Shown piece by piece: positions 809-49,199 of a stretch of DNA of 64,000 bases. Made by a program: the position numbers and the translations under genes. Within the stretch, counting starts at the first letter, position 1; the number at the start of each line of letters is the position of its first letter. The DNA lies in NCBI GenBank assembly GCA_965153285.1, contig OZ229110.1, one strand, 5' to 3'. The notes beneath the pieces are model-generated. The model was not told the origin of the DNA and did not search any database. It saw only the letters and a list, made by a program, of their open reading frames with translations. This stretch comes from Podarcis tiliguerta. Its lineage: Eukaryota.

Positions 809-3800
809 GATGTGCAGGTCCCCGTGTGCCCACTCTGCAGCATCCCGATCCCTGTCAAGCGGGGAGAGATGCCTGACATTGTGGTGGGAGCACACATTGA
901 CCAGGACTGCAAATCGGACCCAGCTCAGCGCAAGCGCAAGGTAAGAGGCTTCATCCGTCCTCTCTGCTGCCTCTTGTGGGACACGTTGCTTTAAGTCCAA
1001 CAGAATCAGATAGATAGACATACAACAGTTGGATACAACCTTAATTTTGTGTTTTTCTATGCATATAGAAATATAATTTCCTTATAAATTAATATTTAAA
1101 CATATACACACACAAAATCTGATATGCCCTGTACTCTGGATTGTGTGTCTCAGCAGACTCTGGGTTCCACAAGCAGGTTTGGGGCCATTATTCAGTGATA
1201 GAGTGTGTGTTTTCTTACAAAAAAGTACCTGTAATTTCCAGGTCAGGCTGGGAGAGACCCCTGTCCCAAACGCTGCAGAGTCTTTGCCAGTCAATCAGCT
1301 AGATGGACCAATCATCTTGATATAACACAGCTTGCTATGTTCCTATGCAGTGTGGTCCAGATGGTTAGGGGTCCTTTCAATGGCAGAACTGTGAGCAACC
1401 CACAGCTAGGGATTTCTGTGGGTCTTTCTCTGGAGGGTATCTGAAGGGCTGGGATAACGGATGAGCTGTGCATCCAAACTGAGTAGCACAAGTGAGTTTA
1501 GACTGGCTGCAGAGTTCAGACTGGCTATGAGCCAAATTGGGGCCAGCCAAGTTAGAAGAACAAGCTTCAAAACAGGGATGGGGGAAATGTGTGGCCCTCC
1601 AGATATTGTTGGACTGCAACTCCCATTAACCCCAGCCAACATGGCCCATGGTTAGAAATGATGGGAGTTGTAGTCCAGCAGCATCTGGAGGCCTGTTCTT
1701 GGGGATTACTGTAATTTGGATGTAATTTCTCATTGGTTAGAGGCTTGCAGTTCGGCATTTCATTGTCATTTGGGCAGTCCAGGACCTCCATGCACACTGC
1801 CCAGGCTTGCGCCCCAGAGAGGTCACTTCGCAATGAGCAAAGGTCTCTTGTATGCATTTACAAAGCAGCTGTGTCCTGGGTGCCCTCCCCCCCCCAACTG
1901 TCTTGAATCACAACTGTGTCCATCTGCCTAGATCTTTACCAACAAGTGTCAGAGGCCTGGCTGCAAGCAACGAGAGATGATGAAGGTTTTGTGTGACCAG
2001 TGTCACGGCAACTTCTGCCTCAAGCACCGACACCCACTGGATCATGATTGCGCTGGCCCTGGGCATTCCCTCTCCAAGGCAGGGTAAAGGCGGGACAGAG
2101 GGCAGGGCTGGGCAAAACACTTGGCATGTGCCAGACACATGCCTGCAGCCATGCAGTAATGCTGGTGTGCATTCTTCAAGAGACATTGGTTTCCTCCCCA
2201 TCCTTGGTTGTTCCAGCACACGATTTGGGGACCTGTGGCCCTCCAGATGTTGATGGGCAACAGTTCACATTGTCCCTGAAAGGATAGTGCTGGAGTGGAT
2301 TCTTGCTAGTCTCAGGGGAAGGGGGAAGGGCTTGCTGCAATAGCGAGAGAGGTCTCCTGTTACCAAGAGTTACGTTTCCCATTTCAGGAGTGCCGCGATT
2401 GCCAGAGCTCAAAAACCTGCCAAAGCACCTACAAGCACTACACCCAGCAATGGAGCCACGAGAGCTGCTGCAGCTCTGCCAACCTCCAGCAGGTACAATA
2501 ATTGCCCGAGTCTGCGTTGTCCCCTACCCTTTCTTCTTATAGCAGCTAAGCCTACTGTACAGCTTCAGGAAGCACTGCACAAGCAACTCCCAATGGACGC
2601 AGGGGTTACGTTCCAAGGCACCCTGATGGATTATCCCTGGGGATTTTCCCTCTCCATCTTACACGCCTCACAAGTAGTGACAGTTGACATCTTTTTTTGC
2701 ACACAGAGCCAGTGAGATGGCAAGAGCACCTCCTCCGCCACAAAGCATATCTCCTCCGGTGGTTGCCCTGCAGAATGGATTGGTAAGTCCTGGCCAGCAA
2801 ACTGGGTATTTACACCATTAAACACAGTCTGTTGCCTTTTCCATTGCACATATGCCACTCTCCAGGTAAATGGCTGCAAAGCTGATATATGTTGGTGGGA
2901 TCACATTCCAGAGTATCCTGGGTGATTTACATAAGAGAAAACAAATGGCTTGCAAAACTGCTTGCAGTCTTAAGCAGGAAAAAATGGGAATAAGACAGAA
3001 ATACAAAGCTGTGTGTTTCCTGGTTTAAGACAGTAATCTGAAAACAGTTTTAAGACTGCAATCCTAGACCCACTGAGAATAATCCTCATTAAAATTGATG
3101 GTGCTTGCTTCTGAGATATATAAACTCCCTCTAGTGAAAACCTCCACAGTGGGGTAGAAGAGCTGAAAGAAAATTCACACCTTGCAACCAATGCATCCCT
3201 TTGGTTTGATAGTACATGGGTAGATGAGTCTAAAAAGTCTGGCCCTCTAGGGGCTGTGGTGGCTCATTTACCAGAAGTAATATTTTTAGTGTTCACTCTG
3301 GAAGTGTATAGTCGATTCTGACCAAACTATGCCTCGTAGGGTACAATATACATCTGGAGGCTTAGTTTGGTCTTGGCATATGCTTTGCCCTGTACCTATA
3401 AGCTGCAAGTTGCTGAGGCTGTTAGCCTCCTCCACGGCAGGCTGAATCTGCTTTTGTGTTTCAGAGTGAGGAGGAAGCGCTGCAGCGAGCCTTGGAGATG
3501 TCCCTAGCAGAGGCAGTGCCCACCCAACCACAACCCCGCAGGTACAGCACGGTTGCGCCAGCCCTGCAGAGATCAGCTGGCTTCGGCACCACTGTGCCAG
3601 GCTGCCTGCTTGGAATCTGCATATATGGGAGACTCTGGCAGAGAATGGAGGGGGGGAGGCTGTGTTAACATTCATGTGCCCAGAGGACTTTTGACATCAA
3701 TTCCAGTCCTCTGAGTGTAAGGAGAGCCTGCTGGATCAGGCCACTGGCCCATCTAGTCCAGCAGATGCCTGTGGGAAACCGGCAAGCAGGACCCGAGCTG

Positions 3801-11199: not shown

Positions 11200-12010
11200 G
11201 TGGAGAGCAGACGAGGGCGCCGGGAGAGGAACGAGCCGCCCCGTCGGAGAGAAGCAGCAGGGGTAGCAGGGTGGGGCAATAGGAGCTGCCCAGGAAGCAG
11301 CAAAAGGGGACGCGGGGCTGGGAGGGACGCAGTCCTTGGCTCCCCCCACCCGCAGCCACCTCCGTCTCCTCCTCCTCCTCCTCTGTCGGGGCAGGGCGGG
11401 GACTCGGAGCCCCGCTGGCCGGGCAGAGCGCGCGGAGCTGCTGCGGGGCGCACGGCGAGGGCTCCAGCCGCCCCATGGCCCCGCTGCTGTTGGCGCTGGC
11501 CGCTGCCTCCCTCGCTTGGCCGTGCGCGGCCGCCCCGTCGGGGAACCGCTTCTCCGAGGCGCGGGTGGCGCGCTGGGCGGCGGCGGCGCTTCGGCACGTG
11601 GCGGCGGCGCAGTGTCCCGAGCGCGGCGGGCTCTTGCCGCGGCCGCAGTGCCAGCGCCTGGCGCGCCTTTCCCAGGGCCCTGGGCCCGCCGTCTATGTCT
11701 CCGAGCCCGCCCGCCCGGGCCACAAGGTGCGGGCGCTGCTGCCCGACGGCTGGGGAGACTGGCCCGGCGCTCCGCCCTTCGTGGCCGGCCGCAACCAGAG
11801 CAGCAGCCCGCTGCGCCCCACCGGCGCGCCCCCCGCGCAAGACGCCATCCTGGTGCTGGACCCCACCCCGGGCGCCAACTTCGGCCACCCGCTCCTTCTC
11901 TTCTATGTCGACTTCAACGTCAGCCCGCGCCGGTGCCGGAGCCGCGACAGCCTCTACGTGGGTAAGTGAATGCCGCATCCTTGGGCCACGCGCGCTCCGT
12001 GGACGACCAC
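11200..12010. promoter_or_regulatory. CpG island over promoter/first exon of the novel gene
   Basis: Very high GC and CpG density against a CpG-depleted background; contains GGGCGG boxes upstream of ATG 11475. Confidence 0.75.
11475..11961 (+). CDS. Novel gene exon 1 (signal peptide, N-terminal domain)
   Basis: ATG in gccgccccATGG context; hydrophobic leader; donor G|GTAAGT at 11961/11962. Confidence 0.9.
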
Positions 12011-15000
12011 TCCCAGCAGAGAACATATTGGCTTGCGCCCATCCCACCCCAGGCTTCCTATTTCCTCCCGTTCCATGGTGCCAGGACCCAGATCAGATCG
12101 GGCATTTGTGCTCAAATCTGCCCGCATTTCAATCCTAAACTACAAGGAGCAATCCTATAGAGGAGCCTGATCCTAAGCATATGCAGAACGCATATGCAGA
12201 ACCGCACCCAGCATCTGATCTGCGCTGTAAAGGCGTCCACATCAGATGACCCGGCATAAAATAAGGTGGTTTAAATAAACGTTGTACAGCGGTTAGATAT
12301 GAGATCTAGTCATATCTGAGGCCCAGTGCCGCTCTGGTTTACAAAACAGGCACTTGCGCCTACCCTTCCCCAAGATTCAGTATCCCAACTGCTGCACCCT
12401 GTGACCCGCCTTATCCTCGGGACATTCTTTTCTCACGAAAATTACTGGCTGGTTTATGCACCTTAATCCTCCTCCTGGTGTTCTTCCTCACGCACTGGAT
12501 CACCTCTTCAGATATTTTGTAGCTTCTTTTTCAGCATCGCTTGGGGCAGAGTGCCCTTTGCCCCAGTCTCTTAAAAGACAGGGAAGAGAATGTTGGGGTG
12601 GGAGATAAACTGTCCACTGAGGATGGGCTAATCTGGAATTAATTAAAAGCAGTTTTTATATTTGATTGATTGATTGAAAACATTTCTAGGCTGCTTAATA
12701 TTAAAAAACCTCTAAACAGTGTACAGAAATCCACAAAAAATAAAATTAGACAGTATCCTAAAAACAGATTAGAACATTAAAAAACAGCAACCCAGGAAAA
12801 CAGTTATTATAGAATCAGGGATTCAGGAAATGCTTGAGCCAAAAGATATGTCTTTTCAAGAAAATCAACTGATGGATGATACTTCAGGTATGGCAGAGGG
12901 AGAGACGTTACGCAGTATAGGAGCAATGTTTGGGGTTGCAAGATTATGTCCTTCCAGATAAGACTGAGGAGTGATTTGGGGTCTCCATCTTGTGACTTGT
13001 CTCAGTTGCTCGAGGGATCTAGTTGCCTGCTCTGCAGTAGTCCTGGCTCTTCCTCTATGCCAGACACTGATTTCCATGGTAGGAGCTAAACGCAGGGTAG
13101 AGGGTTTGGTGTGAGATGTGAGGAGCACCTGCTTACTATGGACTGGTCTTTGGGTTCCCTCTGATCCTATGAGCCAGTGAAATCTGGAAGGAAGGCTGCC
13201 TGGCTTCTCCAGCGTCCTCCTTTCACATATGCTCCTGTTCTCATCTCCTCTGCCTCCCACACACATGCTTTTATAACTGCAATTGGCAAGTGCAGTTGGG
13301 ACTGTTGGGGCTCTCACAGTGTCTTCTTTCCATCAGTGAGTTGTGTGTGACGCTGTCCCTAGCTCAGTGTTTGTGTCAGTCCTGTATGCAGTGGCATCCT
13401 GAGACCAGCCTGCAGGGGTTACTTGGAGAATTTGGGATAGCCAAGAGAGAGGATCTACTGCTGGAGGGGCATCTCCAGTTCCCTCCTGATCCTGGGATGC
13501 GCTGGGGAAAACTCCATCCCTACAGCCTTGAGGGGCTCTCTGGAGTCTAGTGAGCTTCTGTAATCTCAAGGCAGAGGTGGCATCAGCGGAAGAGTTTGGT
13601 ACAGGAAAGTTAGAAGGTGCTGCAGTGCAAAGGGTGACAGGTGGGAGGCTCAGTTGGGTGGAATCTCTCCGGCATGACTGTCATTGATGGGCTAATACTC
13701 AGGGTGTCTTTCAGGGCTTAGTATGAATCAGGGTTTAGCCCTTTGAACACAGGAATCCCAGAATCTGTGATACAAGATATGTGACAGGCAGAAATCAGCC
13801 AAATACTTGTGCTAGTGCAATAGGATTCCCTCCCCTCTGTGCCATCCCCAAATCTGATCCAGAGGGTTGAAGGGAACACCCAGAACAGATTTAAGGGGTG
13901 TGCAAAGGGGAGGAGAGGGAGAAAGCATTACATTGTGCAAGAATTCCTTGCTCTTCGGCGCTGAAAACGACAGTTTATCTGAGCCCAGGGAGCGTTTCCT
14001 TCACATCAGTCTTTCTTGCCGATGTTGAAAAGTAGGATTGTTGTTCTAATCCTAAACCGTCTCACCTGGGAGTAAACTCCATTGAATTCCATAGGATTTG
14101 CTTCTGAGTAGACATAGTAGTTTAGTTAGACATGCTTAGTTAATTAATTGATTTGTTCTATGTAAATGAGGAAATAAAAAAATTCTGAAAGCAGGGAAAG
14201 CATCCTTAAAAAGAAATATATTTATGTGCATTACTGTATATTGCAAGTCCCATATTAGAAGAGATTTTCACTTATGTGGCTGAGACAACAGAGGAGAAAT
14301 GCATCTTCTTTCTTTTAAAAATAATTAACCTTCATTATTTTAAAATGATTAACTTTTTTTTAGTGTGATTAATCATGGAGTCCTTTTTTTAGCCTATCAG
14401 AAATGTGTTTTAATCCATCAGCCTTGTGAATTAATTGGCCAAGCAGTGCAGCCTAACTGGCAACCAACTCCTTTCTTAAGCTCTCCATTTTTGGAGGGAG
14501 TTTTATACCCCATACTTTACACCTCTAGGAGGAAATCCTCTTTTATTCTTCTTGGGGAGACAAGATTCTGACTTGGTTCTGCAGAGTTTACAGTAGAGGT
14601 GTAGTATGCACAGGTGATTATGGCTTGTTGTTTTAATATTTTTATTGAAGTTTTAGATAATATATACAAACAAGAATGCAAAAAATATTGTGAACCCCCA
14701 GCAAAACAGGAGGCAAATGGTCATAAACAGTATATAATAAGACAAAATAAAGAAAAACAAGATGTATATTTTCTCTGGTCTTTCCACAGGGTTGAGGGCG
14801 TTGCACATGAATGCTCTATAAACTGCTCATCGATCACAACTGAAGCAAAGATTCATTCCCATCACCTGTTCCACAGAATCTACTAATTTGTTGGAACCTT
14901 TTTGAACTCTGCTTGTCCCATGGAGAAATTAAGAAAATCAAGAAAATTAAACCATGCACTAAAATAAAATAATATTAATGTATATATAATAATATATTAT

Positions 15001-18000
15001 TCTGTGTCCAGGGTAGCTTTCTACCAGCTCCATCTGGTATGCCAGCTGAGACCCTGCCTGCCTGTGCACTGTCTCGCCAGAGTGGTACATGCTCTGGTTA
15101 TCTCCCACTTGGACTATGGCAATGCACTCTGCGCGGGGCTACCTTTGAAGGTGACAACTAATCCAGAATGCGGCTGTCAGATTAGTGACTGGGAGTGGCC
15201 ACCAGACCATTTAACACTGGTCCTGAAAGACCTCCATTGGCTCCTGGTACATTTCTGAGCACAATTCGAAGTCTTGATGCTGACCTTTAAAGCCCTAAAC
15301 ACCCTTGGTCCAGTATACCCGAAGGAGCATCTCCACTCCATCGTTCAGCCTGGACACTGAGGGCCTTCTGGCGGTTCCCTCATTGCAAGAAGCGAAGCTA
15401 CAGGGAACCATGCAGAGGGCCTTCTCGGTAGTTGCACCTGGCCTGTGGAACAATGTCAAGGAAATAAACAATGATCTGACTTTTAGAAGACGCTTGAAGG
15501 CAGCCCTATATAGGGAACTTTCTCAGCAGGTTTCATTCCAGACATGTTTGTTCTTTGCCTGCAGGCGGCTACGAATGCTTGATTCCAGCCCAGAGGAGCC
15601 GCTGTGAGAACCAGCTGAAGCGCCGACCGGGCCGTGGCAAGGGAAGGAGCCAGCGGTCTGCGGGACGCATCCGCCGCGAGGAGCCGCCCGTCGGTCTCTG
15701 TGAGATCCATTTCCTGCCCATGGTAGTGGTGGCACAGGACCCCAAACACCTGCAAAGGCTGAACTGCGTGGGTAAGTCCCTGGATTGGACGGGCAGTGGG
15801 GTGGAGGGGGGCAGGGTTACAGGATCAGGATTGTAAACCACAAAGGAGACTTCCCCACTTTCAGGATTTAGGAAGTCCAAACGTGGGCAGTGGAGGAAGA
15901 GGGGATGCAGCAGGTAGATAACAGTCTGGCGCAGTGGTTAGATTGCCTGGTTAGGACCTGGGAGACCGAGGTTCAGATCCCCATTCACCTTGAAGCTCAT
16001 ATCTGGCACCTTGGGCCAGTCACTGTCTCTCAGCCTAACCTACCTGGTTGCGAGGACAAAATGGGAAGGGGGAGAACAATGTGACCACCTTTTTATTTAT
16101 TTATTTCAACAGTTTATATACCACTTAACACCTTAGTCCCTAAGCGGTGTACAGTAAGGTGAAAAAGATACACTAATCAGTTAAAACTGTAAAAAAGCAG
16201 AAAACTTTCTTAAAGTGCCTGCAGGAACAGAAAAGGTCTTCAATAGGTGTTGGAGTCTCAGCTGGAAGGGAGCACCACAGAACTGGAACTCAATTGTCCC
16301 AAGTTTGCCCTTGGCCTAGGGCACCTCAACTCACCAATCATTTTCTTATTTCCTGTGTCCAGAGGTGGATCTACTTTGAAACAAATGAAGTTTGAGCTTC
16401 AGGGCCCTGAATCCTGGCAGCGCCCCAGAAGTAACTTCTGTCCCCATCGCTTAAAAAATAATAATGGGTCTCTTAGACCTAATATGAGTGGAGTCATTTG
16501 TTGTTGTCTATATTTCAATAATCCCAAGGTCTGAGAGTCCGTAGAGCAGATGTTGTAAAGGTGTGGTGATCTGTTGTGGAATGACCCCATTGAAGATGAT
16601 AACAGTGGTTACCCAGACCTCGTTGTGAAGGGGCCCCCATGATGGTTCAAGTGTCTGTCTGGGTCTGCTCCATGGGCCTGAGCTTCTTTCACCTCCTCCT
16701 ATCCTGCTACACTTCCTTTTCTTTCCCAGATCTCCGTGGATACAGCCCCTGCCCGGAGCCCCTGCCCCTTGCGAGCTCTAGCTCCACAGCCGCTTACTGC
16801 GAACTCAACAAGAACACGCGGCGATGCCACCGGCAGCAGCTTCCGCTGTACAAGTCTTGCCGCATGTACCAGACGTGTGACCATGCTGTGCTGATTGCAG
16901 GTGAGAAGTGGTGCCTGGGGGCTGCGAGGAGCTGCTGGTTCTGGGAATCTGAAGCCATCAACGGTGTGAGGTGAAATTTTTCCTAGGGTAACAGTTAGGG
17001 CCAGAGGACCAGCTTGTGAGGGCGATAGCGGGAGGGGGCGACATTGTGTGAGAGAGAGCATCGCGCCTCCCTCCCTAAGCTGGCAGAAGCTTCCTGGGCT
17101 TTGGGAAGGAAGCTCCAGACTTTAATACTTCAATATTCTAATTTAGCAGGGACATTTAGGGGAGTAGCCTAGTCCCCCAGTCCACTGACCGCACACCACT
17201 GCAAGCCATTGCATTTGGCCAGCGGATAGATGAGGGTGAATCTGATTGGAGGCTCAGCCTTGTGTTGCGTCAGCCCATTGGTCCATCTACCTGAGTATTG
17301 GCCACTCTGATTGGCAGTGGCTCTCCAAGGCTTCAGACAGCGGACATGCCCAACCTTATCTGGAGATGCCAAGGATTGAACCCGGCTCTTTCTATGTGCA
17401 ACTACATTCTCTGCTACTGAGCTACAGCTTTGTTCTACTGGACATGAGCTTAAAGGGCCCCTTGTCTCCTTGAGGGGCAGTGTTAGTGCTCCTATGCCCC
17501 TTGCAACCAGCTTCAGCCTCTCTTCCACCATGGTTTTTTTCCTGGTATGCTTACCGCGCTTCTCCCCCAGGTGGCTGGCAGGAGCAGGTCACCTACCCCC
17601 GCCATGCGCAGAACCTGCTGCTCTTCTACCAGATGCTGCGACGGAATGGCTTCCGCCAAGAGCACATCAAGGCCTTCTTCGCGAGCGAGGGGCAGGCCTC
17701 AGGTACCAGCACGAAAGAGAGCTAGCTGTCGGCTGCAAGGGTGGGACGGGGCTCTTGGTTTCCTTAGGGGGGTGGGTGACTTTTCAGGGCCCATAGGTAG
17801 GGCTGGGCAATAACCTGGTTTTCAACATTGTGATATATCGCCAGCTAAATATTGTGATAGATTAATATATCATGATGTCTAAAATAAGGAGGAAGGAGGA
17901 GATAAGGAGGGGAGAAAGAAGCAGTTGATATACTTTGCCCGGCCCTACAGCTGAGCAAGTCCCCATGCCGCTCCTGCTCCTGCGAGCTGGAGGGACTTCC

Positions 18001-21000
18001 TTAAATTTCAGCATCAGCTAGCTTCACAAAACGGTGCTTTTTGCTGGCTGCTTCCAGGCGCACACGCACACACAGAAGGGAGGGAAGAGACCTGCTCATT
18101 CAACTCAGGGAGACACAGAAGCACTGGGTGGTTTCCTAGTTTTTCCAATATTGTGATTTTTGCATAATATGTGTGCACACACACACTCATACACACGTAA
18201 TTCACGATATATTGCCAGGTCATTTATTTTGAAACAGTTATCACAATGTGGCCAGAAACCGGTTTTGGATGATATATCAATATATCCCTCCAGCCCTACT
18301 CAGGGGTCGGGATGCCAAGAGCTGCTCTTCAGAGGCAAGACTCTGTTCCTAGCACTTCCTTCTCCCTGCCACCAAGGTTCTGCATTTGGGGGGGGGGTGT
18401 ATTGCATTTCAGAGTGTCACCCTACTTGTCCATCCCACTTGAGAAAAGGCTGGGTGTGAATGCATCTAGCCCTGCTGAAATCTCGCCTTTGGGTTACATG
18501 TCCCTGCAAAAATTACAGGCCTGCACGGCATAGACCAAACCACCTGTGGGGCATTTTGGAGAGTGGGCTAATGAGGGAGCCTAGCAAATATTCCCATGCT
18601 GCTCCAAACTCTGGCCCCTTCCCAGATGAGCAGGATGTGGTGGCAGGGAGCAAGTGGTGGTAGGAGGAATGAGGATGCCACGGGGAAGGTCTTCCCAAAC
18701 TGTGGTCAAGCTTCTTTCAGGTGGTTACCATTAAATACTCAATTGTATTTTCATGCTGCTTCATTTTTCTTTCCTTGCGTTTTATTACATTACAATTTGA
18801 ATCGACAGAACGTAAAAAAACACGTATAAGGAGGACTTGGAATACAGCTTGAAAAATCAGGCAGCATCTAGCATGGTGTATTCCAATTGGTACAACAGGC
18901 AGGAAAAAAATTAAGTGGTGTGCCAAGACCAATGGTTTTTGGGTGGTCTGTGGGAGGGGGGACTGCTGCTTTGGTGTACGAGACTGGAGTGGGTTGGAGA
19001 GAGGAGACAGGCCTTTGGGACATGGGATTAGCAGATCCCTCTCTCCCTCTTCTTTTCTGGACAGTGACTGTGGAGATGGGCGACGTGCACCCAGCCACTG
19101 AGAAGCTGGCCATTCGCTCCCACCTGGCCCTGGTCTGCAGGAGCCTCCACTGCGCCGACTCGCTGGTGCTCTACCTCAACAGCCCAGCAGCCAGCGATGG
19201 CACCATGCTGCTGTGGGATGCCAACCGTAATGGCATTGTAAGTGGGGGGTCAGGGCTGGAAGCGAAGGGAGCTGTCTAGGAGGAGCAGGGCAGCACTTGC
19301 CCATGGAGCCACCAACATTGGCTGTCCCAGGCACTCGTCTCTGTACTCTCTTTACAAAACATCACTAGCCATTTCTGTATTGATTGATTGATTGAATTTA
19401 TATACCACCCTATACCTGGAGGTCTCAGGGCAGTACACAGAAAAGATATATAAAATCAAAATAAGTACAATAACCCAATAACACCTCCCCCAAAAGAGCC
19501 ACATTTCAAAAGGGCATAGGAGACAAAATGAACCTGCTGCTGTTTTCTTTTTTTGAGGATTTAAAAAAAAAATGCCAAGCCAAGCTGATCTATCATCATT
19601 GTTGAGGTATGATGGGAATGGTCCAGTTTTTTTAGCCCTTTGGCCTTAGCTATGATAGGAGGAAGGTTCTATCCCATCCTCTGTCCCCACTATTGATATT
19701 AACCCTCTCCTACTGGAATTTTGCACGTGCAGACAAAACCCTCCAGAGCTTAAGGGTGGATAGGGTGTGCATTATCAGAGGGTGGTGGGGTGCCATGATG
19801 GATCCAGGTGTGACATCACTGTAGAAGGAGAGGAGAAGGGTATGTGCCTCTTTCCTCCCTCCCTCCCACCCACCGACCCCTCCTCTGGTGCACAACCTCT
19901 ATATGTGAATTAACGTGTGGGGGCACAAGAAATACAGTACTGCACAAGTTACAAAGTGGTGATGCTTATTTCACAGCAGGAATATCATCTCTTGGGGCAC
20001 ATCTCTTGCCAATTTATTGGGGGGAGTAACCCACCAGGTAAGTTAGGCAGAGGCAGAGAGAGATCAGAGGGAGAAATACTTTGAGGAAATGGTCTAAATT
20101 AGTCTCCTTGAGCAATGCTATTAAATACATTATTTTGTCAAGGAGTCTGTGGCTCTGCCCAGGAATTGTCTCCAGGTGAATTGAGGCAGCCGTACGCTGA
20201 CCCATAGAAATCCAATAGGAAACCCGTCATGGCGTTCTTCATTGCACCTCACTTTTAAAAAGTTAGAATTTTGAATCCGTGACAATAGCCACAGCCACAG
20301 GCCACCTGCCCAGTGTTCAGCCAAATGCTGATGAATGTTGCTTGTTGGGAAAAGCTACAGGTTGGTGCAGAATAAAGCAAGCAGCAGCAGCAGCAGGTTA
20401 ACTTTCAAGTAAAACCGCTTGGAGGTTTTACAGCAGTCAAGCGGTATATGCATCTTGTTAAATGAATGAATCCTACTTCATCATAATACATCCAAAAAAG
20501 GACCTTGGCTATTGATGCCAATGTCACCTGCCTAGCCAAGTAGGGAATGGGGATGCTAACGATATAAAGGAGACTTTCACTCATGCATTTATCACATGGG
20601 GGTAAGCTATGATCAATTGCTGGCAGGGAGCAGTGAAGTCGGGGTGCCAAGTAAACCCAACTGGGGCAGGAAAATGCGGAGTGGCTGCCTAAGATGCTTG
20701 TGCACACATACAAAGCGGCACCAGCCCTTCTCAAAGGGCTGCATTTGGCCATTTGCCAAGTTTCCTTTGGGGTTTCCTAGGCTGGAAATGGAAAGTGAAG
20801 TGAGCCACTTTTGGCAGTGGGGTGAAGGAGGAGGAGGAGGTCATCCCACCTGTCCCAGCATGTCCTGGGAAGCCTGACTGGAGGAAGGAGAGATGCTGAC
20901 AGAACTGCAGGTGGAGGCTGCAGCCCTCTCCTCTCCTCTGTTCCCTTCAAAGGGCCGTCCAGCTCTTTCATGTGTGCCTGCAGGGAGAAAACAACACCGG

Positions 21001-22870
21001 CCTTTGCAGTGGGTGCTCGCCCTGTCTTGCTCTTCCCCATTTAATCCGCTCCTTTTAACTCCCAGGCAGTGGAATCCCCTTGATCTCCCAACTGTGGAGC
21101 GGGGAGGGGTGTGCGTGTGTGTCCGTGACCAAGGGGCAGGTGCTGATGAGCTGTCCCTTCCCTGCAACAGGCAGATCCTAAGGAGCGGTACCCCATCTCG
21201 GAGCTGCTAGCAGACTTGGAGAGCTGCAACGCTCGCCGGGTTCTCCTCTTCCTTGACCAGAGCTATCCGGGGCCACTGACAAAGAAGCTGCGGGCATCAC
21301 GGCGCCATCCCAACGTGGTGCTCATACGTAGCACCACCACCGCGACTGCCACCACTACCGCCAGCGGTGGGTCGGCTTTTGCCGAGTTCTGGGCCGGACT
21401 GCAGCCTGACCAGTGCCTCCTCCAGCATTTGTTGCCGGTAAGTGCCGTGGAAGGAAGGTGAGCCGTGATTGTTCGGAGTCCAAGGCGTGGTGTTTGCAGA
21501 GAATAGGAACGTAAGGAGTCAGGCTAATTGTCCAATGTTGTCTACTCTGGCAGTGGCTCTCAGGTTTCATGTTGCCTGCTGTCAGGTCCTTTTAACTGGG
21601 GACACCGGGTTTCGAACCTGGTACCTTCTGCCTGCATATGCTCTGCCACCAATTTATGGTCCCTCAAGAGATGGCAAGAATGCATTTGTTTGTTCTGGAC
21701 ATAAATACCAGGAGGCTCAAAATAGTGACTAGGAAGCCCGTCCTCAAATTGCTTTTGGCAGGTGGCATTAGCAACAGGTGTCTCTCCAGTTCAAAGTGGC
21801 TGCTTCTAGTGGCAGCATCACTAACTGGGTGGCAGCAGTCCCTGGGCTCTACTCCCAGTTCCAGGGGAGGGGAGCGGAGAGTAGGGACATTGGTGCTTAG
21901 CCAATTAACATAGATGAAAACTGGCCTGAGCTGTGCAGCAAGTTCAGGGCAGATCACAGCTCCTGGTAAGGCCAAGCCATCTTATGCACCATCTTGCAAC
22001 CAGTTTGGTTTCTCCTGTGTGTGTAGGGAAAGAGTTGGGAATCAATTGGGCAGCACGGCAGACTGAGAAATAAATGCTTAGGTGTAGAGGCAGCAATGCT
22101 GAAAACTAGAACTTGGCAAATGGCCAGAGCCAACCTTTGCTCATGTAACTGACACACACGCCATCTGTGATGACAATTAGAGAATGACATCTGAAGTTTG
22201 TGGAAGGTAGCTTGCACTAAAGGAGTCTTTTGATGTGCAATATGGCACCTTTGGAAAGAAAAATGGGTGTTTTGTTACATCCCACCCAATTAGTTTTACT
22301 GCTCAAAAACAGACCATTGCCATTAAAAGGAAAAGGAGTGTACATTCAAGGTAGTTTGAACTGATTTTTTAATCAAGTGCAATGGATCCAGGCTAAATTG
22401 GTTAATTCCAAGTGATGGCACAGGGTTGGATGCAACAAACTAAAGGAAGTCACTGAAACTTACCATTTTTAAGAGCATGTGGAAGCCAGCCAGGCAGGCT
22501 TAATTCAGTTTGCTTTACTGGCCATCCTTACAGGCCGATTGTATAAGATACTGAGATAATGTACCTGAAACACTGATGCGTTGGAAGTGCTATATAAGCA
22601 TTAATGCTGATGACAGATTGAGTTGTGGCCCAGGGCAACCTTAAGTGAAGCAATCTCTCTCGTTCCTTGCAGGTGGGTCCGTGGTCTGCAGTCTTTGGCT
22701 CGGGCACCCCAGCCCAGTTGCTCAATGTCTCATTAGCAGGGGCACCCTGCCACTCTGTGCCACCCCTGGGGGAAGAGGAGCGCCAGCGCCGCTACCAAGG
22801 CTGCCAGAACCTTCCCACCATGTTGTGGTACCAGAGCAGGCACCAGCAGCTGCAACAGGACGACGACTGA
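11475..22870 (+). CDS. Uncharacterized secreted protein, 544 aa, 7 exons: signal peptide + Cys-rich N-terminal region + catalytically degenerate clan CD/C13 (legumain-like) domain
   Basis: Exons 11475-11961, 15565-15771, 16730-16900, 17571-17702, 19065-19237, 21171-21437, 22673-22870 (487+207+171+132+173+267+198=1635 nt, open, ends TGA). Intron phases 1,1,1,1,0,0 all compatible; GT donors (4 of 6 are GTAAGT) and pyrimidine-tract CAG acceptors. ATG sits in a CpG island; AATAAA at 23410-23415. N-terminus MAPLLLALAAASLAWPCAAA is a typical signal peptide; HAVLIAGGW..YPRHAQNLLLFYQMLRRNGFRQEHIKAFF resembles the legumain N-terminal strand/helix. Confidence 0.9.
15003..15520 (+). mobile_element. L2-clade LINE 3' fragment (degenerate ORF2)
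   Basis: VVHALVISHLDYGNALCAGLPLK..VLKDLHWL..RAFSVVAP.LWN motifs with frameshifts. Confidence 0.75.
15565..15771 (+). CDS. Novel gene exon 2 (basic stretch, RIRR furin-type site)
   Basis: ttctttgcctgcag acceptor; GYECLIPAQRSRCENQLKRRPGRGKGRSQRSAGRIRREEPPVGLCEIHFLPMVVVAQDPKHLQRLNCV; G|GTAAGT donor. Confidence 0.88.
15922..16090 (+). mobile_element. tRNA-derived (MIR/CORE-like) SINE
   Basis: A-box tggcgcagtgg, B-box ggttcagatcc, CORE-like ccttgggccagtcactgtctctcagcctaacctacct; inverse copy at about 49258-49460. Confidence 0.6.
16730..16900 (+). CDS. Novel gene exon 3 (Cys-rich linker, start of C13-like domain)
   Basis: ttttctttcccag acceptor; DLRGYSPCPEPL..YCELNKNTRRCHRQQLPLYKSCRMYQTCDHAVLIA; G|GTGAGA donor. 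Confidence 0.9.
17571..17702 (+). CDS. Novel gene exon 4 (RH motif helix)
   Basis: ttctcccccag acceptor; GGWQEQVTYPRHAQNLLLFYQMLRRNGFRQEHIKAFFASEGQAS; G|GTACCA donor. Confidence 0.88.
17798..18298. mobile_element. Probable non-autonomous DNA transposon
   Basis: tagggctgg ... ccagcccta terminal inverted repeats with repeated gatatatc subterminal motifs; TSD not clean. Confidence 0.5.
19065..19237 (+). CDS. Novel gene exon 5 (His-strand equivalent, first half of EF-hand loop)
   Basis: tcttttctggacag acceptor; [58 protein letters not shown]; |GTAAGT donor. Confidence 0.9.
21171..21437 (+). CDS. Novel gene exon 6 (Cys-strand equivalent)
   Basis: cccttccctgcaacag acceptor; ADPKERYPISELLADLESCNARRVLLFLDQSYPGPLTKKLRASRRHPNVVLIRS..SAFAEFWAGLQPDQCLLQHLLP; |GTAAGT donor. 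Confidence 0.9.
22673..22870 (+). CDS. Novel gene exon 7 (terminal)
   Basis: ctcgttccttgcag acceptor; VGPWSAVFGSGTPAQLLNVSLAGAPCHSVPPLGEEERQRRYQGCQNLPTMLWYQSRHQQLQQDDD*. Confidence 0.86.
   Translation: MGPWSAVFGSGTPAQLLNVSLAGAPCHSVPPLGEEERQRRYQGCQNLPTMLWYQSRHQQLQQDDD

Positions 22871-24790: not shown

Positions 24791-49199
<24,409 letters not shown>

Follow-up and report, generated by a model that had tools for sequence, protein, structure and literature searches.

A squamate member of an unnamed bilaterian protein family has the legumain fold, lacks the catalytic dyad and is probably an extracellular pseudo-peptidase

In a 64,000-nucleotide stretch of contig OZ229110.1 from Podarcis tiliguerta (assembly GCA_965153285.1), which we call the window, we have found a seven-exon gene that is real, transcribed and constrained, and that encodes a protein with the fold of legumain and other peptidases of family C13 without their His/Cys dyad. 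The gene is a squamate member of an old bilaterian family that has no name and no Pfam entry, and of which the present analysis is the founding description. In our view the product is probably a secreted pseudo-peptidase of the legumain fold in which the dyad was lost and the former active-site face was reused for extracellular binding. Judged by its sequence and those of its relatives, it would be classified within clan CD as a non-peptidase homologue of family C13, and an earlier note on this DNA that called it a pseudoenzyme would be right in that call.

Both loops that should carry the dyad are replaced. The first follows a strand ending in L-Y-L-N and reads N-S-P-A-A-S-D-G; the second follows the strand R-V-L-L-F-L and reads D-Q-S-Y-P-G, to be compared with the C13 strand followed by [ED]-[AT]-C-x-[SG]-G. 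Hence no His-Gly is found after the third core strand, and no Cys in an [ED]-[AT]-C motif after the next one. Direct reading confirms the two codons on which the earlier note had based its call, namely CCA (Pro373) at 19184-19186 and AGC (Ser421), one change away from TGC, at 21261-21263. The replacement of the nucleophilic Cys by Ser is well supported by the Pfam register and by the retention of the acidic residue two places before the former Cys, which is a hallmark of C13: the Pfam matches of proteins P0034 and P0025 start nine residues before the Ser, in an ungapped strand, and put the Ser at profile position 160, the place expected for legumain Cys189 provided that legumain and the 258-position model are roughly collinear. 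The claim that the catalytic His was exchanged for Pro itself is not confirmed. The loop contains no His in any register, but which residue is its exact equivalent depends on the register chosen: an ungapped alignment anchored on Tyr places the His at Pro373, the H-G-P or H-A-P of certain nematodes together with the small residue that follows points to Asn371, and anchoring on the conserved D-G yields Ala374 or Asp377. Pfam, for its part, aligned a downstream T-A-H-G of Trichuris to the His part of the PF01650 model.

The replaced loops are strongly conserved. We use as reference P0001, a database orthologue of 544 amino acids from Elgaria and the best match to exon 6 (86% identity, E 1.4e-39), whose numbering is that of the window protein plus 4. 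In a census of 139 sequences, the first loop has N375 in 133, S376 in 134 and P377 in 138, and the second has D or E at 423 in 137, Q424 in 132, S425 in 136 and Y426 in 134. N-S-P and D-Q-S-Y are thus near-invariant (132 to 138 of 139 per site), as the earlier note had anticipated for orthologues of a functional pseudoenzyme. It had also named as contrary evidence a family whose members mostly carry His-Gly and Cys, which the census does not show. In no protein of the census, nor of a set of 52 mostly invertebrate members, is a His in the first loop combined with a Cys in the second, and the orthologues therefore do not refute the pseudoenzyme reading. The departures from the consensus are few: spiders, a tick and a cestode have D-Q-N, with Asn at the Ser position; decapods have A-G-P in the first loop and D-[AT]-S in the second; P0190, the only member with a Cys, has D-Q-C and keeps N-S-P; and the trichinellid nematodes Soboliphyme and Trichuris (P0045, P0186) have H-G-P or H-A-P together with D-H-S. 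It is possible that the Cys of P0190 and the His of the nematodes are remnants of, or reversions to, the catalytic residues. When 47 sequences with less than 70% mutual identity were compared, the strand with N-S-P proved to be the most conserved stretch of 12 residues anywhere in the protein, with the first strand of the domain second and the N-terminal D-P-x-P..F-G-H third. A constrained pseudo-peptidase is supported by these observations, since the loops lack His and Cys in nearly all members and are among the best-conserved parts of the protein.

The gene lies on the + strand at 11475-22870. Direct reading and exon-wise translation give 544 codons in an intact frame with no internal stop, and AG and GT are found at every exon border. 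The residue numbers used in the earlier note (299/300, 373 and 421) fit this seven-exon model exactly. When P0001 was compared with the window by tblastn, all seven exons were recovered in order, at 80-93% identity per exon. The exons of the window were searched singly; for the protein as a whole, including its fold, P0001 was used instead. The features are as follows.

11475..11961, + strand: exon 1, with the start codon, predicted signal peptide and N-terminal region (from the list of open reading frames; 86% identity in the tblastn of P0001).
11859-11888, + strand: the D-P-x-P...F-G-H motif of exon 1, made of invariant alignment columns.
15565..15771, + strand: exon 2, a Cys-rich linker, found as a phase-1/phase-1 AG..GT candidate and matching P0001 residues 167-235 at 87% identity.
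About 15618-15683, + strand: multibasic, disordered stretch of exon 2 (predicted local distance difference test, pLDDT, below 50 at P0001 181-206).
16730..16900, + strand: exon 3, a Cys-rich segment and then the first C13-like strand, D-H-A-V-L-I-A (93% identity by tblastn).
17571..17702, + strand: exon 4, the first helix of the C13-like domain with Arg299-His300 (tblastn; joined to exon 5 in a transcript contig).
17600..17605, + strand: CGC CAT, Arg299-His300, aligned to legumain Arg44-His45.
19065..19237, + strand: exon 5, a strand, the former His loop and the first half of a calcium-type loop (both junctions in the transcript contig).
19178..19186, + strand: AAC AGC CCA, Asn371-Ser372-Pro373, the loop in place of the catalytic His-Gly, with Pro373 at 19184-19186.
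19217..19237, + strand: first half of the calcium-type loop, D-x-N-x-N-G-x (Asp384-Ile390), from the exon 5 translation and the column census.
21171..21437, + strand: exon 6, the remainder of the calcium-type loop, a helix, the strand of the former Cys loop and the next strand (junctions in the transcript contig).
21171-21185, + strand: second half of the calcium-type loop, A-D-x-x-E, in exon 6.
21255..21266, + strand: GAC CAG AGC TAT, Asp419-Gln420-Ser421-Tyr422, with Ser421 (21261-21263) at the position of the catalytic Cys and Asp419 at that of legumain Glu187.
22673..22870, + strand: exon 7, the end of the C-terminal domain with the motifs G-A-P-C and G-C-Q-N-L-P-T, and the stop codon.

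Transcription was assessed by comparing public sequencing runs with positions 17571-22870. Run X2, from a very close relative, contains a contig of 1887 nucleotides (word depth 50) that splices exons 4, 5, 6 and 7, skipping 1362, 1933 and 1235 nucleotides, each bounded by GT..AG and each corresponding exactly to a predicted intron. Since these junctions, all within exons 4-7, are seen directly, a spliced mRNA exists in this relative. The contig runs on past the stop codon for about 400 nucleotides, and has 714 nucleotides 5' of exon 4, which is the right length for exons 3 and 2 and part of exon 1. Two bulk RNA-seq runs from the same organism as X2 gave only a few reads, on exons 4, 6 and 7, indicating low expression in those two samples. 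Constraint was judged from exon versus intron divergence and from a reading of the listed differences as synonymous or not, in place of a codon-based ratio of non-synonymous to synonymous rates. In run X1, which comes from another organism and has genomic-looking contigs, the introns are 4-5% diverged from the window, and exons 6 and 7 1.3-2%. When the codons were read by hand, six of the seven listed X2 exon differences proved to be synonymous (21341, 21344, 21383, 22702, 22718 and 22744), as did the difference at 22726, which is listed in X1 only. The sole non-synonymous one, G>T at 17601, changes Arg299 from CGC to CTC (Leu); it is present in the X2 transcript contig and in all four raw RNA reads of run X24, from a sister taxon. 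The intact frame, the spliced mRNA and the mostly synonymous changes in close relatives bear out the view of the earlier note that this is not a decaying pseudogene. It should be noted that short stretches of the introns, at 17813-17850, 18256-18286 and 19385-19445, have many loose ends in all four runs compared, and that read or contig depth at the first and the last of these is far above that of the surroundings; all three behave like interspersed repeats.

The likeness to legumain is real, but it is visible only at the level of the family and the fold and is weak at that of the sequence. Pfam searches returned nothing relevant for five exon translations of the window and no match for P0001, the phmmer search of exon 6 against PDB sequences returned chance antibody matches only, P0034 alone had no match among PDB sequences, and the ESM Atlas gave no usable lead for exon 1. 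A match of P0034 to a Legionella plasmid (tblastn, E 9) was rejected as a C13 reference, the protein concerned being a 3,700-residue hypothetical one without a C13 domain. At the family level, PF01650 is matched, below its threshold, by 12 of 48 full-length relatives at E<=0.1 (best E 3.2e-5), and it is the only Pfam family matched by more than one of these members. The AlphaFold model of P0001 has a mean pLDDT of 71 and a predicted template modelling score (pTM) of 0.72; averaged over blocks of ten residues, the pLDDT is 80-93 for most of residues 283-450. The model shows the alternation of strands and helices of clan CD. With this model, Foldseek ranked PIGK first (7w72_K, E 7e-7), and found legumain (E 4e-5), caspases, a metacaspase and MALT1. 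VIA-align superposed the model on human legumain (4awb_B) with a Z of 17.4 and a root-mean-square deviation (rmsd) of 3.0 Å over 201 residues (model 283-523, legumain 26-287); the superposition starts at the strand of exon 3, which is residues 283-292 of the model. The Z values were 15.4-17.2 for plant legumains and ligases and PIGK, 14.6-17.2 for metacaspases and 14.6-14.8 for caspase-6. As to family C14 (caspases and metacaspases), the structural scores are equal to or below that of legumain, and there is no Q-A-C-x-G. In the ESM Atlas, the closest clusters beyond the family are those of bacterial and archaeal C13 peptidases, which are leads only. According to the model, then, the C-terminal 260 residues are predicted to have the caspase-hemoglobinase fold of clan CD, and to be closest to C13, that is, to legumain, GPI8/PIGK and the prokaryotic C13-like proteins.

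The family is both old and widespread. When exon 6 was compared by phmmer with 1.84 billion representatives, 55 matches were obtained; with P0001 as the query, 162 proteins were retrieved at E<=1e-5. These belong to squamates, turtles, lungfish, bowfin, gar, teleosts, sharks and rays; all are labelled 'uncharacterized protein LOC...' or 'si:ch211-67e16.11', and none carries a precomputed Pfam domain. Full-length squamate orthologues are 84-88% identical to P0001, and sharks about 50%. An invertebrate profile search added 62 further proteins; together with cluster look-ups it places members in amphioxus, hemichordates, echinoderms, molluscs, annelids, nemerteans and a bryozoan, and also in chelicerates, a millipede, decapods, a mayfly, a cestode and trichinellid nematodes. 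All family motifs (D-P-x-P..F-G-H, C-E-I-x-F-L-P, N-S-P, D-x-N-x-N-G, D-Q-S-Y, G-A-P-C and G-C-Q-N-L-P-T) are present in the exons of the window. Among the best 120 matches of P0001 there is no genuine-looking protein from a mammal, bird, crocodilian or amphibian. The only mammalian label, that of the Mustela entry P0163, was set aside as apparent contamination, the entry falling in one cluster with a cichlid protein. The zebrafish gene name ch211-67e16.11 occurs in no paper found by our literature search.

The protein has a hydrophobic N-terminus, about 17 near-invariant Cys residues and no predicted membrane segment after the signal peptide. On the basis of the apparent signal peptide and the Cys residues, we take it to be a secreted, disulfide-bonded protein. 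Between the two former catalytic loops lies a segment, D-x-[DN]-x-[DN]-G-x-A-[DSE]-x-x-E, that is near-invariant from nematodes to reptiles; in the window it reads D-A-N-R-N-G-I / A-D-P-K-E, interrupted by the intron that separates exon 5 from exon 6. Ligand positions 1, 3, 5, 9 and 12 and Gly6 are present, and the segment, which fits a DxDxDG-type loop better than an EF-hand, may bind Ca2+. The region preceding the C13-like domain has no known counterpart in our searches: the first 280 residues have no Pfam match, and the part encoded by exon 1, modelled alone, gave no Foldseek match and a best VIA Z of 4.1 for any chain, several cystatin-fold chains scoring at the noise level (Z 2.8-3.6). 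A profile search matched the N-terminal D-P-x-P..G-H to the stalk and membrane segment of TNFRSF18, which was rejected as spurious. The motif D-P-x-P-x-x-x-F-G-H, which includes His138, is invariant in 49 aligned family members. The multibasic stretch of exon 2, K-R-R ... R-x-R-R-E-E, falls where the confidence of the model is very low, and in invertebrate members [KR]-R immediately precedes the next conserved Cys; one may speculate that this stretch is a cleavage site for a proprotein convertase.

These features suggest the following scenario. The His-Gly and Ala-Cys loops would have been replaced by N-S-P and D-Q-S-[YF]-x-G, probably before the bilaterians diverged, and the new loops, the strands that carry them and the adjacent calcium-type loop have stayed strongly constrained ever since. 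Most likely the protein cleaves no peptide bonds, and its remodelled former active-site face, probably stabilised by Ca2+, most likely binds an extracellular partner.

Several points weigh against this scenario. That the protein is most likely non-proteolytic is read from the missing residues only. The Ser at the nucleophile position is near-invariant in vertebrates and can be read as a retained nucleophile, and the invariant His of F-G-H could in principle reach the former active site. The calcium-type loop departs twice from a PROSITE-type EF-hand pattern, in having Ala at position 8 and in the Arg that follows position 12; in the model it is preceded by a strand instead of a helix and has no two-helix flank, and it is not a canonical EF-hand. 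Five distant members score 15-21 bits against PF01650, in mutually consistent registers and below the gathering threshold of 22.8, and with two family profiles only the first strand and helix align to PDB sequences (plant legumains and peptide asparaginyl ligases, E 0.15-0.5). Finally, the fold is that of the predicted structure of the orthologue P0001, 80-93% identical per exon, and not of the window protein itself.

A related reading, which we hold more tentatively, is that the dyad was discarded early and that N-S-P, D-Q-S-Y-x-G, the calcium-type loop and the N-terminal region packed on them form a new site, serving either Ca2+-dependent ligand binding or a non-proteolytic catalysis; mammals, and apparently birds and amphibians as well, would then have lost the gene, which would explain why it has never been studied.

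The earlier note had gone further and proposed that the Asn/Asp-specific S1 pocket of legumain is kept, making the protein a non-cleaving trap or receptor for Asn/Asp peptides, or a cystatin decoy, which we regard as unlikely. Its reading of CGC CAT at 17600-17605 as Arg299-His300, aligned with legumain Arg44-His45, is correct, the alignment being given by HMMER and by the fixed spacing of 15 residues to the N-G at the end of the helix. The proposal also gains from the equivalent of legumain Glu187, which is D or E in 137 of 139 sequences, and from the occurrence of R-H in many molluscs and annelids, some echinoderms and some vertebrates, which makes R-H probably the ancestral state of the family. 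However, the Arg column contains R in 67, H in 47 and Q in 17 of the 139 sequences. The other squamates and turtles whose orthologues were examined have His at this place, many fishes have Gln and, as described above, the sister taxon has Leu; and among the 52 mostly invertebrate members, arthropods, hemichordates, amphioxus and nematodes have neither the Arg nor the His. The His300 position, by comparison, is kept in 123 of 139. To judge from its variation, Arg299 is not constrained in the way that the two former catalytic loops are, and an Asn-specific S1 pocket is therefore unsupported. The argument for it hangs on a single residue, which is not the same even in sister taxa, and the cystatin decoy, the peptide trap and the adhesion ligand suggested alongside it find no specific support beyond this one variable dipeptide.

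It is also improbable that the protein is still an enzyme of changed chemistry, with Ser421 as the nucleophile and a base supplied from elsewhere, for instance by His300 or by the His of F-G-H. The Ser is kept in 136 of 139 sequences and His300 in 123, His138 of exon 1 is invariant in 49, and the trichinellid nematodes with H-G-P or H-A-P have D-H-S as well, all of which would suit such an enzyme. Against it stand the Asn at the Ser position in spiders, the tick and the cestode, the Cys of P0190 and the A-G-P loop of decapods, owing to which no nucleophile/base pair is common to the family; the lack of a nucleophile shared by all members speaks against a hidden Ser enzyme. To our knowledge, no Ser-dependent enzyme of clan CD has been described. 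That the gene is a decaying pseudogene or a false model, resembling legumain by chance, can be dismissed as scarcely credible: exon translations taken alone have no Pfam or PDB sequence match, but all seven exons are intact and bounded by canonical splice sites, the mRNA is seen spliced in a transcript contig, orthologues occur across Bilateria and the Z to legumain is 17.4.

As regards the surroundings of the gene, ZFAND2B-like exons lie upstream at 869-3563 on the + strand, where the N-terminal part of the database protein P0006 matches at 45-92% identity per piece, and exons resembling those of the ABC transporter ABCB6 lie downstream on the opposite strand, at about 26600-31100 (-). P0006 (450 amino acids) consists of a ZFAND2B N-terminus fused to parts of the legumain-fold gene; it is probably a read-through mis-annotation, and the fusion suggests that the two genes adjoin in the genome of P0006 too.

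We consider the loss of the dyad with reuse of the former active-site face the probable course of events, and it is instructive to compare the protein with its closest known counterparts. It resembles legumain (C13, PF01650) in its alpha/beta fold over about 200 residues and the order of strands and helices, in the first-helix Arg-His of the window gene, in the acidic residue two places before the nucleophile position and in being, by prediction, a protein of the secretory pathway. Unlike legumain, it lacks the catalytic His and Cys, has about 13% identity and a Pfam score below the threshold, has no C-terminal prodomain (the legumain stabilisation and activity modulation domain, LSAM), and carries a 280-residue N-terminal extension without a fold match as well as the calcium-type loop between the former catalytic loops. 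GPI8/PIGK, the C13 catalytic subunit of the glycosylphosphatidylinositol (GPI) transamidase, is the best Foldseek match and has VIA Z values of 15.4-16.8; it differs in being a membrane-anchored enzyme of the endoplasmic reticulum, with a His/Cys dyad and within a five-subunit complex, and in its high rmsd (6.5-7.4 Å). The prokaryotic C13-like peptidases are the nearest ESM Atlas clusters (features 0.90-0.91 and template modelling, TM, scores of 0.63-0.69 by query, these being leads without an alignment or E-value), but they match PF01650 above the threshold, presumably have the dyad and have other domain partners.

Pseudoenzymes of clan CD are few, and include c-FLIP, a trypanosome metacaspase and the caspase-like domain of Raptor. 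The metacaspase in question, Trypanosoma brucei metacaspase 4 (TbMCA4), has Ser in place of Cys, as does the window protein. The long form of c-FLIP, c-FLIP(L), is a pseudo-caspase of the same clan (PMC7586951). Both c-FLIP(L) and TbMCA4 share with the protein described here a clan CD fold in which catalytic residues are replaced, together with conservation and function of the protein. They belong, in contrast, to family C14, are intracellular or parasite-specific, and act by pairing with, or by being cleaved by, active paralogues, whereas the window protein is C13-like, predicted to be secreted, endowed with family-specific domains and bilaterian-wide in range. Our literature search found no C13-type pseudoenzyme or non-peptidase C13 homologue; the 'pseudoprotease' passages of a tick paper concern serine proteases and not C13.

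In summary, we have described an old and widespread family, probably secreted, which is constrained exactly where catalysis was lost, as one would expect of a repurposed binding site. Zebrafish carries si:ch211-67e16.11, so that the function can be tested there directly. Should the lack of mammal, bird and amphibian proteins among the best 120 matches reflect gene loss, the family would represent an ancient extracellular component that has been lost in several tetrapod lines.

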